Virus record (IMG/VR): IMGVR_UViG_3300006931_000029
Coordinates: 62,001-126,000 of that record
Length of the DNA: 64,000 nucleotides
Direction: 5' to 3' (one strand)
Part shown: in pieces, positions 50 to 62,129 of the stretch
Numbering within the stretch: position 1 is the stretch's first letter
Layout of the letters: each line of letters begins with the position of its first letter
Translations under genes and position numbers: made by a program
The notes under the pieces: model-generated
The model's input: the letters and a program-made list of their open reading frames with translations, nothing else
What the model was told of the DNA's origin: nothing
Databases searched by the model: none

Positions 50-123
50 GTCGTGTGAAACTGGAAGAACTTAGACTCTTAGGACCAAGATTTGGTCCAG
101 GCTGACAAGGTTAATTTGGAAAT

Positions 124-209
124 TGGTGGCGAAAGAAGGGATCGAACCTCCGACCTGGTCGTCCATTTTTAAGGTGGCCGTCCATGCTCTACCGCTAAGC
201 TATTTCGCC
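124..209 (-). tRNA. atypical 86-nt tRNA with an anticodon stem extended by about 6 bp (apical loop CU-UAA-AA)
   Basis: Acceptor GGCGAAA/TTTCGCC-A-CCA, D arm GCTT-AGCGGTA-GAGC, T arm GGAGG-TTCGATC-CCTTC and a 4-nt variable region are normal. The anticodon arm is 29 nt rather than 17 nt. Confidence 0.75.
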
Positions 210-212
210 GAC

Positions 213-282
213 TTTCAAGAGAACACCGAGGAAACAGGAACAATCCAGATTACTACGGCCAAAACCTGGCGTTCTCTTGAAA
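213..282. repeat. perfect 12-bp inverted repeat closing a stem-loop that fills the spacer between two tRNA-like RNAs
   Basis: TTTCAAGAGAAC at 213-224 and GTTCTCTTGAAA at 271-282 enclose 46 nt. Confidence 0.65.
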
Positions 283-283
283 T

Positions 284-357
284 TGGAGCCGACCGGGGAT
301 TAAGAAACACCCCTCTTCCGTCCCATGGGACGGCGTGCGCGGTTACACTATGACGGC
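284..357 (-). tRNA. degenerate 74-nt tRNA-like RNA; CAT lies inside a self-complementary arm with no 7-nt loop
   Basis: Cloverleaf order and CCA end are kept: GCCGTCA/GGTCGGC (5 of 7 pairs), D stem GTGT/GCAC, anticodon arm CCGTCCCATGGGACGG (a perfect 16-nt palindrome), and T arm GGGG/CCCC with a non-canonical 11-nt loop. Confidence 0.55.
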
Positions 358-363
358 ATAAAG

Positions 364-469
364 TGGTGCCAAGGCCGACATCGCTGCCGGCGGCGAAACC
401 CTGCCCGCTGCATTAGTCGCGTCCGAAGACACGTCGAGAGCAGTGGCGTTTGATTCCACGGGGCTTGGC
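364..469 (-). ncRNA. 106-nt tRNA-like ncRNA with acceptor stem, ACCA end and four internal arms
   Basis: GCCAAG/CTTGGC-A-CCA closes the molecule. Arms: GTGG/CCAC; CGTGTC-TTCG-GACGCG (UUCG loop) inside TGC/GCA; GCGG/CCGC; CGGCA-GCGA-TGTCG (GNRA loop). There is no TTCG-type T loop at the canonical position. It lies 6 nt after the tmRNA 3' end. Confidence 0.6.
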
Positions 470-475
470 ATAAAT

Positions 476-830
476 TGGTGGAGATGGCGGGAGTTGAACC
501 CGCGTGCTAAAAGAGAACCGAATCTGAGTCTACGCGCGTGTCCTATTTTAATGTCCAGGCGGACCTATCTTTGGCTGAGTTTTTGAGTTCCGCCTCAGCC
601 GGCAGCGAAATCAGTAGCGTAGTTTTTACGCAGCACGATCTACCCCGCTCATCTTAATCGTGCCACGCGCAGCCTAATTAGGCCGCGAGACGGAGCTCGT
701 TGGAACGAGCGAACGCCTTGACAATGGTGTTGCCATTTGTGGTTTGCCAAGTCTTGTTATGGAGGTCGACCTAGCAGTCTCCAGCGCGCATCAGGTATCT
801 GTCTCCTAAAGTAGAATCCAGAACATCCCC
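476..830 (-). ncRNA. ssrA: tmRNA (355 nt); probable tag (A)GNTIVKAFARSNELRLAA encoded at 678..734
   Basis: 5' end GGGGATGTTCTGGATTC and 3' end CGCGGGTTCAACTCCCGCCATCTCCACCA give an acceptor stem with a G3-U70 pair. A pk1-like pairing GCTAGGTC/GACTTGGC is present, and the short ORF ends in LAA-stop. Confidence 0.95.
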
Positions 831-5471: not shown

Positions 5472-6367
5472 GGGTCCCAGTCGTCGACTGCCCGTCCTGC
5501 TGCTTCTGGGTCGAGCATCGTTATTCCTCTGGAATACTCGTCCAGCACTGGACCTTCATCCAAGTCGGGTTTTGGATTTGGTATGAAATTCGCAGGCTCA
5601 TAGTCTCCTTCCGCTTCCGTGTTCAGAAGCGTGTAGCCGAGCGCTTCGAAAAATTGGTCTTGCTGCGACGGAAACTTCTCGCCTGTTTTCTTGTCGAACT
5701 GCGGGGTAGAGCCAAGCTTCGAAGCGACCAAGTCCATCACTTCCTCCAGAGTAGAGTCGGGAGGAATTGCGTCGAAGATTTTCTTCACGGCAGACGGACC
5801 ACACTTGTTCACGCCGTTGATTCCGTCGCCAGGATCGCCGATGATCGCCAAAGCCACAGCGACTTGAATAGGTTTGTAAACATCCCACCGTTCACAAATC
5901 TCCCTGTCGGTCAGGAGGTGCTTCCGGTTGAGGCAATAATACTCAGACAAGGGACCTTTCAGTTGTTGAAGGTCTTTGTCGCCTGACATGACGACCGCCC
6001 TGATCCCCCGGGACGTTGACTGAGCTACGGCAGTCGCTACCAGGTCATCCGCTTCATAGTCCCCGTGGTGAGCATAGGCGCGGTCTCCAAACGCGTCACG
6101 GACAAACCTGGCAAAGTCCACCAGGTCGTCTTCGTACTCCTGAGGCTTGGGCTTCCTGGGCTTGTTGGTCTTGGGTTTGCCGTCGAAGCAGAAGAGGATT
6201 CGGCTCGGTACGCCGATCTCCGACCGCATTGCGTAAAATAAACTTTTGAACGCGGCAATGAGGTAGCCCCTGTCGACGTACTTCAAGTGGCTTGCTTGAG
6301 CTGCGTAGAAGGATTTTGCAAATAGTCCGTTTGCGTCTACGATAAGGTCCTTGCCATTGTGCTGCAC
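5468..6367 (-). CDS. 5'-3' exonuclease (FEN/T4 RNase H, PIN fold)
   Basis: LIVDANG, FCFDGK, YEADD, SGDKDLQQL and GDPGDGINGV motifs. Confidence 0.9.
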   Translation of the reverse strand: MQHNGKDLIVDANGLFAKSFYAAQASHLKYVDRGYLIAAFKSLFYAMRSEIGVPSRILFCFDGKPKTNKPRKPKPQEYEDDLVDFARFVRDAFGDRAYAHHGDYEADDLVATAVAQSTSRGIRAVVMSGDKDLQQLKGPLSEYYCLNRKHLLTDREICERWDVYKPIQVAVALAIIGDPGDGINGVNKCGPSAVKKIFDAIPPDSTLEEVMDLVASKLGSTPQFDKKTGEKFPSQQDQFFEALGYTLLNTEAEGDYEPANFIPNPKPDLDEGPVLDEYSRGITMLDPEAAGRAVDDWDP

Positions 6368-6380
6368 GGAGTGAAGAACC

Positions 6381-6587
6381 TCACTTACCTTTGAACTTGT
6401 TCAACTCCTCTTTCTCGGCCTTTGCGGCTTCTTCCGCCCATTCTAGTAACCACGTCAGAGCGTAGTCAGGGGTCCTCAATAAGTCAATCGTCATGCCCCG
6501 GTTGCTGGAGGCGAGAATGAATCGCTCTCTCCAGCGAGCCTTTTCGTGGGCGAAGACCCCGTCAACGAAAAAAGTCAGCGTCGAGAT
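6381..6587 (-). CDS. gp51-like hub assembly ORF overlapping the gp26-like gene in the +1 frame, without a nearby ATG
   Basis: The open frame reads ISTLTFFVDGVFAHEKARWRERFILASSNRGMTIDLLRTPDYALTWLLEWAEEAAKAEKEELNKFKGK*. It is not in the ORF track and fills the gap exactly. Confidence 0.55.
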   Translation of the reverse strand: MSTLTFFVDGVFAHEKARWRERFILASSNRGMTIDLLRTPDYALTWLLEWAEEAAKAEKEELNKFKGK

Positions 6588-7314
6588 TTAGGTCGTGAGA
6601 GTACTGATTGCCACACGAGACGCACTTGTGCTTGATCTCGGTTCCGAGATGCGGCGTAAGCTTTTCCATCATCTCCGTGTAGTAGGAGAAATCAGCGGGT
6701 GGCAGAGCGTTGAAGTACGTGATTGCTTCGTCCGGCGTGTCAGGTGACGTCTCGTTGACTGCGACCAGAGCCGAAACTGCCCGAGTCATCTTGCTAGAGA
6801 CTTTGTCAGTTTCAGGGCGTTCCAACACGCCTAGTTCATCTCGAACCAAGAGAGGTCGAAGACGAATCTTGTCTTTGCAAACAGGAAGCGTGATCTCGTC
6901 GTAGCCCACGTAGTTGTCCGGCTTTTCAGAGATTTTCTCGAGGTTGTCAGGAACCACGAGTTTCACCTGTTCGACGTGACCGCATGATGGACATTTGCTG
7001 TCGTAGTTCAGCGATGAATCTCTGGCGAGTGCTCGCGCAACCAGCAGAATCGTGATGACGTCGCCGACGGGCATCGAGTCAACTTTGTCGAGGTTGATTA
7101 GTTTTTTCACCACCTCGAACGAGATGCGATCAACCGGCACAGTGCGGAGAGCTTTGATAACCCACTCGTCGACGCTTTGATCCCACGGATAGACCGTCAC
7201 CTTGCCGCCAGGCAGCTTGTCCGGCATGGAGTAACCATGAGACAGTAAGGTGATTTCCTTCTTGAACTTCTCTCGTGCCGGGGCGAGAGATTGCAGATTG
7301 GATTTGATGGCCAT
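6562..7314 (-). CDS. baseplate hub assembly protein (T4 gp26-like)
   Basis: GDVITILLVARA, CPSCG, KIRLRPLLVRDE, CVSCG and the terminal LDADFF. Start MAIKS (7314) is preferred because GTTCTA lies 6 nt upstream. Confidence 0.7.
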   Translation of the reverse strand: MAIKSNLQSLAPAREKFKKEITLLSHGYSMPDKLPGGKVTVYPWDQSVDEWVIKALRTVPVDRISFEVVKKLINLDKVDSMPVGDVITILLVARALARDSSLNYDSKCPSCGHVEQVKLVVPDNLEKISEKPDNYVGYDEITLPVCKDKIRLRPLLVRDELGVLERPETDKVSSKMTRAVSALVAVNETSPDTPDEAITYFNALPPADFSYYTEMMEKLTPHLGTEIKHKCVSCGNQYSHDLNLDADFFR

Positions 7315-52091: not shown

Positions 52092-52611
52092 CTCCCTTTA
52101 CGTACGTTCGAATGCTGCCGAGACAGAAAGTACTCTTGTTCGCCTCCAGCAGAATCCGAAGGTCCTGCCTGGTTATCGTCCCTCTATCAACCAAGGTGTC
52201 GATTGCATCCTTGTCTAATCCTGAAGATACACACGAAAATTCGGCGCTGTGACCGCAGCTAAATAGCCAAAGAGCAACGGCGTGACGAGAACGGTTGATG
52301 CCGCCGGAACAGTGGACAAACGTCGGAAGTCTTGCTCCAAAACAATAGTCAAGGGCTCGCTTGATTCCAAACAACGACGTGGTCGGCCACTTGGCGTATT
52401 CGTCAATTGGAAACCACAGCGCTTTGATCCACGGCGAAGCGTCAAACGTGAAGTACGGGCTGTCGGTGACATTGATGACGGCACGAAAATTCTCCAGCAA
52501 CCATGCTCGTTGCTGGTGGATTTCTAGATTTTCAACTGAACCAATCGTGATACCGAAATCCGGAACCACGACCTTCACCCACGTCGGTTTACTGGAGGTC
52601 GTTAACGCCAT
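52060..52611 (-). CDS. dual-specificity/tyrosine phosphatase-like protein
   Basis: FVHCSGGINRS (HCx5R) motif. Confidence 0.8.
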   Translation of the reverse strand: MALTTSSKPTWVKVVVPDFGITIGSVENLEIHQQRAWLLENFRAVINVTDSPYFTFDASPWIKALWFPIDEYAKWPTTSLFGIKRALDYCFGARLPTFVHCSGGINRSRHAVALWLFSCGHSAEFSCVSSGLDKDAIDTLVDRGTITRQDLRILLEANKSTFCLGSIRTYVKGDATLESQELS

Positions 52612-52999
52612 CTAAACGTCTTCCCGTGTTAGGTTCGATTTGGACAGCTCGGTCGTCCCACAATTCCGTCATCGCAAAATCCTTTTGACACGTGATCGGA
52701 AGGACAACGCCAAAGTGCTTCTCACACCATTTTCTAATGTGAATCGCTGCCTGCATCGCGTCGCTCTCTCGGTCGTTGGCGCCAACGAACTGCTCAACCC
52801 GATCTTCAGGGTGAATCATGTTTAGCGGCCAGACACGAGCTGTGAAGATTCGAACTTTCTTCCCTTGGACGAGCCAACGTCGAAGACGCAGAGCCATCGC
52901 TGGCACTGGTTCTCCGATGTGTTCAGCGTTTTTCCACCCCTGGTAATCGGCCAAAGTTCCGTCGAGGTCAACCCCGATCCATCCGCCAATGTGAGCCAT
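52589..52999 (-). CDS. HAD-superfamily phosphatase-like protein
   Basis: IGVDLDGTLA, IFTAR and ELWDDRA motifs. Confidence 0.8.
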   Translation of the reverse strand: MAHIGGWIGVDLDGTLADYQGWKNAEHIGEPVPAMALRLRRWLVQGKKVRIFTARVWPLNMIHPEDRVEQFVGANDRESDAMQAAIHIRKWCEKHFGVVLPITCQKDFAMTELWDDRAVQIEPNTGRRLDGVNDLQ

Positions 53000-54300
53000 T
53001 AGATTTCGTAGAGTCCGTGCAGTCGTGGACCATCCTTGATGGCTGCAAGATGCGCCTTCGTGTAGAGGATATTGTGGTCCTTGTGGAACTGCGACGGAAA
53101 GTAATTCTCAAGGTGCACAATCTGGAAACGGCACGTCGAGCCGAGATGTTTGATGTAGTGCTGCATGTGTTTCTTCGTGTAGTACCAGAAGCTGTTTGAG
53201 TTCCAGAACGACACGTGGCTCGGGTCTTGGTACGCTCCACGCCCATCAGTTGACGGCACTTCGATCAAGAACAAACCTCCGTGGTGCAGAACTCGGTACG
53301 CCTCATTCATAAACTGCACCACCTTGTTAGGATGAATGTGTTCAATCAAATCCTGAGCGCGTAGTGCTCCGACGCTGTTGTCTGGAAATGGCCACGTCTC
53401 TTCGAGATTGGCGATCACGGGCGCGTCGTGAACGTCGACTCCTTCCCAGCCAGGAGGAGGGTTGATTCCGCCGCCGAGATCGAGACAGCGAAGACCTTGC
53501 CGTTTCCAAAAAAAGACAGCAAAATCTTGGATGAACCTGGCGTGGACTTGCCACGTCAGCTGTTCGATCAATTTCTGGTGCTTCAACCACGTGTTGTCGC
53601 CGTGGATCAGATATTTGTAGAGCACCTTCTCGATGTGGTAAAAATTGCCCATGCTCATCTGATAGAGCTTGCACATCAGCTCAAGATCATCGCAAACCAG
53701 CATGTTTTCGTTGTGCCCTCCGACAGCGTTGTAAGCGTCCATTCTCCACGCTCGAACATGGTCAGGAGCATACCAGATTCTCGTGACGTTTTGAGGAATT
53801 GCCAGCGGGTGAACAGCCACTCGGTGAGTTTCCACTGTGGCACCATGAAATTCGCGCTCAGTGTATTCCCAGCCATAAGCCGGACCATAAATTTCAGGTT
53901 TGCCGTCGGCGTGAATTCGCACAGCGTCAGAGAAAACAAAGACGGCGTTAGTCTTCAGGAACGCGGCCAAAACTTCTTCCAGACAATCTACTGATAGCTC
54001 GTCATCGTGGTCGAACTCGACGGCGAAGGGACTCATGGCGTGTTGACACGCCTTCTTTTTCAAAGCGCCGACGTTGATCGAACCATCTTCGTTTTTCTTA
54101 CCCTCAAACGGGAAAAATTTGACGCGCTGATCGTTCTCGACTATTGCGTAGCATTCTTTAGACGAGTTCTTTTGCAGGATTTTGCCGTTGAGCACCACGA
54201 TCCATTCCCAGTCAGTAAGCGTCTGGCGCTTCAAACTTTGGTAGGCTTGCTCAAGCCACTTAATCGAGTTGGTTGGTGTGATAACTGAAATCTGAGCCAT
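52999..54300 (-). CDS. GT2 glycosyltransferase fused to a class I SAM methyltransferase
   Basis: ISVITPT, WIVVLN, EFDHDD and CDDLELM (GT2), followed by LDLGGG, WPFPDNSV and AYRVLHHGG..IEVP (MTase). Confidence 0.88.
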   Translation of the reverse strand: MAQISVITPTNSIKWLEQAYQSLKRQTLTDWEWIVVLNGKILQKNSSKECYAIVENDQRVKFFPFEGKKNEDGSINVGALKKKACQHAMSPFAVEFDHDDELSVDCLEEVLAAFLKTNAVFVFSDAVRIHADGKPEIYGPAYGWEYTEREFHGATVETHRVAVHPLAIPQNVTRIWYAPDHVRAWRMDAYNAVGGHNENMLVCDDLELMCKLYQMSMGNFYHIEKVLYKYLIHGDNTWLKHQKLIEQLTWQVHARFIQDFAVFFWKRQGLRCLDLGGGINPPPGWEGVDVHDAPVIANLEETWPFPDNSVGALRAQDLIEHIHPNKVVQFMNEAYRVLHHGGLFLIEVPSTDGRGAYQDPSHVSFWNSNSFWYYTKKHMQHYIKHLGSTCRFQIVHLENYFPSQFHKDHNILYTKAHLAAIKDGPRLHGLYEI

Positions 54301-61177: not shown

Positions 61178-61528
61178 ATGGACGACAAGAAGCCGGACGA
61201 ACTGGTCGAGAAGCTGCTTAACGAAGACCCGGGTGACGAGAAGCTCGATCCGGTTTACGTTCAGCGCAGAGATGACGTTCGTCGTCAAGCTGCTGAGCCG
61301 TCCAGAAAGCCGAATCCACGCGAAATGGAAATCGAGCAGGGTGACGACGATGTCGATCCGGAGGAGCAATTTGAGTTGGACCTTCGCGAAGCGATTGAAG
61401 GAACAATCGAAGGTGCAAGAGCCAGAACTTATGCCGAAAATGGCGTGCTGACCCGCAACAAGGGTTTGGTGGTGGATACGTCCTATGGGACGTTCCAAGT
61501 CACGATCGTTCTGAAGAATCGCGCTTAG
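61178..61528 (+). CDS. acidic hypothetical protein with LVEKLLNE leader
   Basis: 116 aa with TAATTAG 2 nt upstream. Confidence 0.6.
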   Translation: MDDKKPDELVEKLLNEDPGDEKLDPVYVQRRDDVRRQAAEPSRKPNPREMEIEQGDDDVDPEEQFELDLREAIEGTIEGARARTYAENGVLTRNKGLVVDTSYGTFQVTIVLKNRA

Positions 61529-61767
61529 TAGCGGATGTGGTGGGCTTCGAGAGACCTGAGCCTAGCTTCAACGTTGGCGTCATAAAGCAACGCTTCAATT
61601 CGGGCTAGCCGTTCTTCGACGGTCATTCCTTTCAGGCCCGAAAGAAATACGCGCTTAGCGAGACTCGCTTTCGCCGTCCGACACGAGGCACAAACTCGAG
61701 AGCCATCTACGACTTCGTGTTTGTCTTGGTCACATTCGATGCAGTGAAAATCAGCGACTAGAGCCAT
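61525..61767 (-). CDS. small CxxC protein
   Basis: CIEC..CASC followed by a leucine-zipper-like helix. Confidence 0.55.
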   Translation of the reverse strand: MALVADFHCIECDQDKHEVVDGSRVCASCRTAKASLAKRVFLSGLKGMTVEERLARIEALLYDANVEARLRSLEAHHIRY

Positions 61768-62129
61768 TAGGACGCCTGTTGTTCGGCGTCTCCAAGAACG
61801 GCAGTGGCCATCTTCTGAAGTTCGACCCAGCAGGTTGGGTCGAGGTTGATCGGTTTGATTTCGTACTTCGGAAACATGTCGGCTAGTTGCCGCGGAGTGA
61901 TGTCCTCGTTGATAGGAGCCAGAATTAGCATGACCGTGCGGAGCAATTCGTCTTGGAAGTCAAGGTCGGCTCCTGCGCAGTAGTCCAAGTCAACACAGCC
62001 GCATCCTACGAGTCCCATGCGGACACGGACACCAAACATCATCCGCGTGAACCCGATTTCCCAGCGACCACCGAGAGACACCCAGCGGTGGAAGAAATTT
62101 TCGTTGGGTTGTGCCGGTTTGAAAACCAT
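61767..62129 (-). CDS. hypothetical (probable early) protein
   Basis: 120 aa directly downstream of a sigma70-like promoter. Confidence 0.55.
   Translation of the reverse strand: MVFKPAQPNENFFHRWVSLGGRWEIGFTRMMFGVRVRMGLVGCGCVDLDYCAGADLDFQDELLRTVMLILAPINEDITPRQLADMFPKYEIKPINLDPTCWVELQKMATAVLGDAEQQAS

Follow-up and report, generated by a model that had tools for sequence, protein, structure and literature searches.

A conserved tRNA-like RNA with a long anticodon-side helix at the head of a jumbo-phage tRNA array

The window, the whole 64,000-nt stretch of DNA analysed here, corresponds to positions 62,001 to 126,000 of the IMG/VR virus record IMGVR_UViG_3300006931_000029, and close to its start it carries an 86-nt tRNA-like gene, located downstream of the phage transfer-messenger RNA (tmRNA) gene and at the head of a tRNA array. 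At the level of sequence, this gene is real and conserved, and it is maintained in five phage sequences. Our favoured reading, held with moderate confidence, is that it encodes a conserved, single-copy, CCA-ended tRNA mimic that does not decode, and that its long irregular helix is a putative docking module. We regard the RNA as a probable non-decoder because its loop varies between relatives, the UUA codon is already served, the length of its arm lies outside the range of decoding tRNAs, and no intron accounts for the extra nucleotides. The gene is laid out as follows, where RNA position p corresponds to window position 210-p.

Window 124..209, minus strand: whole tRNA-like gene, 86 nt including the encoded CCA, with the 5' end at 209 and CCA at 126-124.
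Window 203..209, minus strand: 5' strand of the acceptor stem, GGCGAAA, pairing with 128-134 over 7 bp and followed by U8 and A9.
Window 186..200, minus strand: D arm, a 4-bp stem with the loop AGCGGUA containing G18 and G19; two pairs covary, and A26 follows.
Window 156..184, minus strand: extended anticodon-side arm of 29 nt, UGGACGGCCAC / CUUAAAA / AUGGACGACCA, with 11 layers and a 7-nt loop; 5 of the 11 pairs are changed on both sides among relatives.
Window 178..180, minus strand: 5' half of the invariant core, C30 G31 G32; C30-G50 and G31-C49 are invariant and 32·48 is always purine·A.
Window 167..173, minus strand: loop CUUAAAA, in form a loop with U33, UAA and A37; not conserved in relatives.
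Window 160..163, minus strand: 3' half of the invariant core, G47 A48 C49 G50 (GACG), invariant columns of the alignment of homologues.
Window 135..151, minus strand: T arm GGAGG / UUCGAUC / CCUUC, with a canonical T loop; 100% paired in the family.
Window 124..134, minus strand: the acceptor stem's 3' strand (128-134), discriminator A (127) and CCA (124-126).

The layers of the extended arm are U-A, G-C, G-C, A·A, C-G, G-C, G·A, C-G, C-G, A-U and C·A, three of the 11 (A·A, G·A and C·A) being non-standard. A first-pass annotation of the window had described standard acceptor, D and T arms, a long irregular anticodon arm with a 7-nt UAA loop, a doubled UGGAC and the absence of the long variable arm expected of tRNA-Leu. 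This anatomy is accurate in every detail: the repeat extends to AUGGACG, which is present twice in the arm, and the variable loop comprises only 4 nt (GGUC), so that the gene lacks the class-II long variable arm by which a bacterial tRNA-Leu is recognised.

The gene resembles a class-I elongator tRNA in its acceptor, D, variable and T regions, in its tertiary-contact nucleotides (U8, A14, G18 G19 and UUCRA in the T loop are all present), in its CCA end and in the form of its 7-nt U33 loop. Where such a tRNA has a 5-bp anticodon stem and a conserved anticodon, however, the gene has 10-11 layers with fixed non-standard pairs, and the anticodon varies among orthologues. Active tRNAs are known to have a 5-bp anticodon stem, with 6 bp in tRNA-Pyl, tRNA-Sec-like molecules and one mitochondrial type (PMC7609411), and our literature search on long, elongated or extended anticodon stems returned nothing beyond these 6-bp cases. 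The latter (tRNA-Pyl, tRNA-Sec-like and allo-tRNAs, and mt-tRNA-Ser UCN) share with the gene a lengthened, sometimes interrupted stem (PMC7609411), but they gain a single pair for which the core compensates, whereas the gene gains 5-6 layers on a standard core. Our searches of the literature and of Rfam brought up no described equivalent of the gene.

Homologues were located through a GroES-like protein encoded beside the tmRNA, by a word-index protein search followed by contig look-up. Relatives of this protein were found at 98, 90, 88, 65 and 59% identity, and the contigs of three of them (90%, 88% and 65% identical) contain the homologous site; one metagenome scan yielded an additional variant. 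The resulting alignment, A1, holds five distinct sequences, namely the window gene, L026 (from the 90% relative), L027, L028 and L039. Every relative has one homologue, which lies downstream of the tmRNA and heads the tRNA array. Other routes gave no further members: a DNA search of public phage genomes and IMG/VR found no near-identical copy, pattern searches with the D and T arms brought up nothing but ordinary tRNAs for Val, Met and Asn in unrelated phages, contigs reached through the tail sheath ended before the gene, and a search of IMG/VR for the GroES-like neighbour returned nothing.

Comparison of the five homologues strongly supports the cloverleaf with the long arm. In this structure 88.6% of cells are paired and 11 pairs are changed on both sides; none of 500 shuffled controls reached either value, and shifting the partners by 1-3 columns lowered pairing to 40-47%. 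RNAalifold predicts the long arm even when the structure is not supplied. All seven pairs of the acceptor stem are paired in every homologue, three of them with changes on both sides, and five pairs of the long arm covary, including the outer GG/CC of the window gene, which is CC/GG in L026. Compensatory changes are thus found in all four helices, in phages down to 65% GroES-like identity, while the length of the arm stays at 10-11 layers (11 here). The pairs C30-G50 and G31-C49 are constant in all five, and position 32·48 holds either G·A or A·A in each of them, never a standard pair, which supports the middle of the long helix being a selected surface. The CCA end is encoded in all five homologues, and the discriminator is A except in L026, where it is G. 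The covariance model R1, derived from A1, scores the window gene at 96 bits and the family at 90-99 bits, with ordinary tRNAs reaching at most 48.5, and it finds the gene in single copy in the complete phage genome.

Standard tools recognise the gene poorly. The Rfam tRNA model assigns it 48.2 bits against a gathering score of 29, fitting 23 nt into a place meant for 11, and is the only Rfam family to match it; neither the gene nor the flanking region 205-480 matches a YrlA, Y RNA, ribozyme or intron model. ARAGORN misses it by default and, with introns allowed, makes the structurally implausible call of Phe(aaa) with a 6-nt intron. From a single sequence the arm is unremarkable, as its fold of -5.1 kcal/mol is equalled by 33 of 200 shuffles, and the unconstrained minimum-free-energy structure of the whole RNA differs from the cloverleaf. 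Support beyond chance therefore comes from comparison among homologues and not from single-sequence folding.

The loop is the least conserved part of the RNA, reading CUUAAAA in the window gene, UUUAAAA in L028 and L039, CAAAA in L026 and GACGA in L027. In L026 the loss of UU has removed both U33 and the UAA, and the loop of L027 is reduced to 5 nt. An ordinary class-II tRNA-Leu(UAA) is encoded in all three genomes with enough sequence, and the TTA codon is rare (2.6 per 1000 codons). The additional 5-6 layers, about 15 Å, would bring the loop out of register with the CCA end and would thereby prevent productive decoding in the ribosomal A site. The first-pass annotation had considered a normal A-site tRNA unlikely, which agrees with an arm of 10-11 layers in all relatives, against 5-6 in decoders, and with a loop that is not constant. 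Its proposal of an anticodon-loop decoy is at odds with a loop that drifts on a helix that stays fixed, the middle of the helix being conserved.

For the non-decoding mimic that we favour, the following course may be envisaged. The RNA would probably be excised and matured like a tRNA and fold into an L shape, and its irregular mid-helix would probably offer a sequence- and shape-specific docking site for a protein. It would most likely act by binding, holding or titrating a tRNA-binding factor instead of delivering an amino acid to a codon; candidate partners would include an enzyme or toxin of the host that is directed at tRNA, or part of the phage Ro60/Y-RNA module encoded in the same island. 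A protein-binding role is plausible because YrlA, a bacterial Y RNA, provides a precedent for a protein-binding long helix on the anticodon side of a tRNA core. The tRNA-like domain of tmRNA and the tRNA-like structures at viral 3' ends are likewise CCA-ended mimics that use the tRNA processing or binding machinery outside ordinary decoding, but they lack such a D-arm/anticodon-arm cloverleaf, and the gene encodes a free-standing one.

Several observations weigh against this interpretation. The YUUAAAA loop with UAA is common to the two most distant branches, the window gene and L028/L039, so the loop is not free of constraint, and a loop-dependent role in these lineages is conceivable. That the arm is too long to span the decoding and peptidyl-transferase centres is a geometric argument that we infer from its length. 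The five distinct sequences come from one phage lineage, so common descent accounts for part of the covariation counts. A scan of 36 mostly large open reading frames (ORFs) brought up no aminoacyl-tRNA synthetase, RNA ligase or other tRNA enzyme that would point to a partner, and no partner protein emerged. Finally, contigs of two metatranscriptome runs cover the tmRNA only and not the gene, and Logan contigs cannot show the ends of a small RNA.

The surroundings of the gene bear on its interpretation. The virus record measures 224,954 bp, has direct terminal repeats and is rated complete; it represents a 225-kb jumbo myovirus from rhizosphere or soil that is only distantly related to cultured phages, with recognisable sheath, tube, baseplate, major head protein, DNA polymerase and related genes. 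On its minus strand, a co-oriented island runs from the tmRNA through two RNAs that we call X1 and X2, a 64-nt hairpin, the gene and a further RNA, Z, to about 37 tRNAs, a Ro60/Rsr-like gene and an HNH endonuclease gene. The tRNA array is interspersed with YrlA-like elements and contains a mini RNase P-like RNA. The elements that flank the gene are:

Window 476-830, minus strand: tmRNA, with the tag GNTIVKAFARSNELRLAA.
Window 364-470, minus strand: X1, 107 nt, ending in ACCA.
Window 284-357, minus strand: X2, a 74-nt CCA-ended cloverleaf.
Window 216-279, minus strand: 64-nt hairpin with the stem CAAGAGAACGCC / GGUGUUCUCUUG, immediately 5' of the gene.
Genome 61476-61549 (L001 7477-7550), minus strand: Z, also at L027 9605-9676 and L026 12064-12133.

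ARAGORN labels Z '???'; it is a cloverleaf of the tRNA type that ends in discriminator G and CCA and has no GG in its D loop. The place of its anticodon loop is taken by a UUCG tetraloop in L027, by GUAA in L026 and by 6 nt in the genome of the window; on its sequence, Z is another non-decoding tRNA mimic, adjoining the gene. X2 has a 6-bp stem capped by CAUG, a 4-nt loop, together with an unusual T loop; L026 has a copy of X2, but L027 and L028 do not. The terminal stem of X1 covaries among four relatives (GCCAAG/CUUGGC versus GCCGAG/CUCGGC), and a GNRA-capped 7-bp hairpin stands where a T arm would be. X1 and X2 have no Rfam match. The features of Z, X1 and X2 imply that the lineage maintains several CCA-ended tRNA look-alikes without a usable anticodon, and the loops of Z and X2 support reading the gene as a mimic as well. 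A possible but tentative extension of this reading is that X1, X2, the gene and Z form a battery of four adjacent anticodon-less mimics, in which the rigid, doubled helix of the gene, with its fixed C-G/G-C and purine·A core, would be a trap or adaptor for a tRNA-binding protein, the target being either a tRNA-directed immune enzyme of the host or the Ro60 complex of the phage.

A related alternative, which we think somewhat unlikely, casts the RNA as a decoy or sponge that cannot be cleaved: a host defence enzyme or toxin that attacks the anticodon loop or the CCA end would grip the tRNA body, and the stilt-like arm would lift the loop beyond its reach. The fully canonical core and CCA end would suit such a role, as would the place of the gene among four consecutive CCA-ended RNAs that lack a usable anticodon loop. 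In jumbo phages, both host defences aimed at tRNAs and phage measures against them are well documented (PMC7824862). However, no defence system, target or host was identified, and a decoy of this kind leaves the conserved mid-helix core and its purine·A mismatches unexplained.

About as doubtful is the possibility that the gene encodes an RNA partner of the phage Ro60/Rsr protein, an un-permuted Y RNA whose core is the effector and whose long helix is a Ro60-binding or spacer stem. The features concerned are:

Genome 52566-54128 (L042 12566-14128), minus strand: Ro60/Rsr-like gene, 520 aa, directly after the last array tRNA and followed by the HNH endonuclease gene.
Genome 59795, 60157, 60354, 60723, 60925, 60998, 61077 and 61308: the eight sites of the motif GYWGYGA-N-GGUUACUUC.

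The Ro60/Rsr-like protein matches phrog_850 ('RNA-binding protein') over its full length, has orthologues with TROVE and VWA domains, and finds its closest public relative, at 46% identity, in a 634-kb uncultured phage. Its gene closes the same island, on the same strand as the tRNA-like gene, and jumbo-phage TROVE proteins are thought to act with a tRNA-like partner (PMC7824862). YrlA of Salmonella likewise combines a tRNA-shaped core (D and T arms and an acceptor-like stem) with a long irregular anticodon-side helix, of about 11-13 nt per strand, that leads to the Ro60 site; it does not decode, and phage copies are encoded with tRNA genes and a Ro60 gene. The 5' strand of YrlA corresponds topologically to the 3' strand of a tRNA anticodon stem, where the gene has its invariant GACG, and GGACGA loosely resembles the GGUCCGA and GNCGAA motifs.

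The likeness of GACG spans only 4-5 nt, however, the Ro60/Rsr-like gene lies as far as 8 kb away, and the tRNA-like gene differs from YrlA in its architecture. YrlA is circularly permuted, with its ends at the anticodon side, a loop-closed acceptor stem, no anticodon-side loop and usually no CCA, whereas the gene has an open 7-bp acceptor stem, an encoded CCA and a capped arm. Of the features of a Y RNA it thus has the core and the long helix, but neither permuted ends nor a closed acceptor stem. It also lacks the GNCGAA and GYWGYGA...GGUUACUUC signatures, of which it shows GACG(A) only. A scan for the latter motif returned the eight neighbouring sites, all in the array and none elsewhere in the genome, with none in the gene itself; the motif occurs seven times in L026 and six times in L027. 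In the unrelated Rhizobium phage RHph_Y65 it stands five times just upstream of a TROVE gene (L045 10842-11830), where a T arm, a closed acceptor stem and a D arm come after it, as in the layout of YrlA. The UAC of the motif agrees with the conserved UA of Salmonella YrlA. The motif-bearing elements are likely Y-RNA-like Ro60 partners. No member of the R1 family was found in three other Ro60-encoding phages, LR745206 (634 kb), Vibrio phage TDDLMA and RHph_Y65, either in the whole genomes or in the surroundings of Ro60. Because the motif-bearing elements fit as partners, the gene lacks the motif and its family was not found in these three phages, we hold a direct role with Ro60 to be unlikely.

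As a separate observation, Vibrio phage VB_VaC_TDDLMA has a 75-nt annotated 'tRNA-Leu' with the loop UUUAAAA (L044 15147-15221, plus strand), the annotated tRNA nearest to its Ro60 gene, from which it lies 1.6 kb downstream. This tRNA lacks a long variable arm, has a Leu-like D loop and represents a class-I-shaped UAA tRNA in another Ro60-encoding phage.

That the gene is a working tRNA which reads UUA (or UUA/UUG) despite its long arm appears improbable. Its 7-nt loop with U33, UAA and A37, the recurrence of this type of loop in L028 and L039, and a discriminator A73 as in tRNA-Leu are in favour of such a function. Against it stand the altered loops of L026 and L027, the tRNA-Leu(UAA) already present in three genomes, the missing long variable arm, a C·A or A·C mismatch at position 31·39, and a stem of 10-11 layers where every known decoder has 5-6.

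Still less probable is an intron-bearing or processed precursor tRNA from which 12 nt are removed to give a 74-nt tRNA. Precedents exist both in the same array, where tRNA-like genes have inserts of 55-70 nt in the anticodon region, and in the 'enigmatic' introns of Lak megaphages, whose array tRNA genes are also over-long at the anticodon region (PMC6784885). Three of the array genes (L001 6090-6219, 6658-6793 and ~5716-5851, minus strand) have in common a structured insert, about 55 nt long, in their anticodon region; it contains the covarying helix CUCAGUC/GAUUGGG and bears the motif GYWGYGA-N-GGUUACUUC. This common insert is absent from the gene, homology between it and the 12 extra nucleotides having been sought and found to go no further than one 7-mer. 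In contrast to the Lak inserts, the extra nucleotides are split 6 + 6 across the helix, forming two 6-nt helix halves whose excision restores no tRNA. An exhaustive scan of contiguous deletions in all five sequences yielded no 5-bp stem with a U33 loop, and the gene has neither a bulge-helix-bulge nor an Rfam intron match. It is therefore not a simple intron, and the doubt that the first-pass annotation had voiced about an excised 12-nt insert, for want of a bulge-helix-bulge, was well placed.

Least credible of all is a decaying tRNA pseudogene or an assembly error: ARAGORN's default silence and the unremarkable single-sequence fold would suit it, but the same sequence recurs in independent assemblies, all four helices are maintained by compensatory changes down to 65% GroES-like identity, as purifying selection on the structure would leave them, and the gene keeps a fixed position in single copy. 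A contig from a separate soil study made years later spans window positions 121-315 with zero differences, and the identical gene lies on three further metagenome contigs, one of which is the window's own source contig, which together exclude an assembly artefact. Reads or relatives with a normal 17-nt arm, which would have exposed such an artefact, were looked for, and none was found in contigs or homologues.

Other parts of the island were also noted. The tmRNA is covered in two rhizosphere metatranscriptome runs, by one contig over 478-822 in the first and by two overlapping contigs over 479-822 in the second, all without differences, which suggests that the tmRNA is present as RNA. The stem of the 64-nt hairpin is kept in L026 and L027 with a variable interior, and the hairpin may be a processing or spacer element. 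Within the tRNA array lies an RNase P-like RNA:

Genome C1 56335-56548 (L001 2336-2549), minus strand: 214-nt RNase P-like RNA, also at L026 15711-15932 and L027 13996-14231.

This element matches bacterial RNase P RNA class A with 46.9 bits (E 3e-13), short of the gathering score, which is 100. The catalytic-core blocks GAGGAA, GGUGCAA, UUAGAGAAAUG and ACAGAAUCC..GGCUACA are retained, but some 150 nt of the specificity domain are missing. With conservation of about 84% in two relatives, the element may represent a mini RNase P RNA encoded by the phage. Two further candidates, both with G3·U70, were missed by ARAGORN and Rfam: a tRNA-like gene at L001 ~7087-7163 (minus strand) with the loop UUUGCAA (Ala UGC) and an aberrant D arm, and a CCA-ended element of about 125 nt at L001 ~6411-6495 (minus strand). 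Outside the island, a tRNA with the anticodon CUA, of the amber suppressor type, lies at genome 132581-132656 (L052 6581-6656, plus strand), and another at L026 17850-17927. Among 111 long ORFs TAG is the least used stop (15, against 50 TGA and 46 TAA), and code 11 leaves the structural and replication genes that were examined intact, so recoding is without support.

Phage tRNA arrays are usually read as supplements to codon usage or as replacements for host tRNAs lost to defence. Apart from a usable anticodon arm, the conserved gene described here keeps all that a tRNA requires, and the mimics beside it have dispensed with the anticodon loop by other routes, which suggests that part of such arrays encodes tRNA-shaped binding RNAs and not decoders. 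Annotation calls for caution in these arrays, as ARAGORN misses the gene or reports Phe, and a label based on the anticodon would say Leu. With a tRNA core and an 11-layer arm, the gene would offer a natural compact scaffold. If the tentative trap or adaptor reading were true, it would represent a new mechanistic class of phage tRNA mimic. The partner, if found, would show phage tRNA mimicry at work outside translation, directed perhaps at a tRNA-directed nuclease or toxin of the host, at a processing or charging enzyme, or at Ro60.
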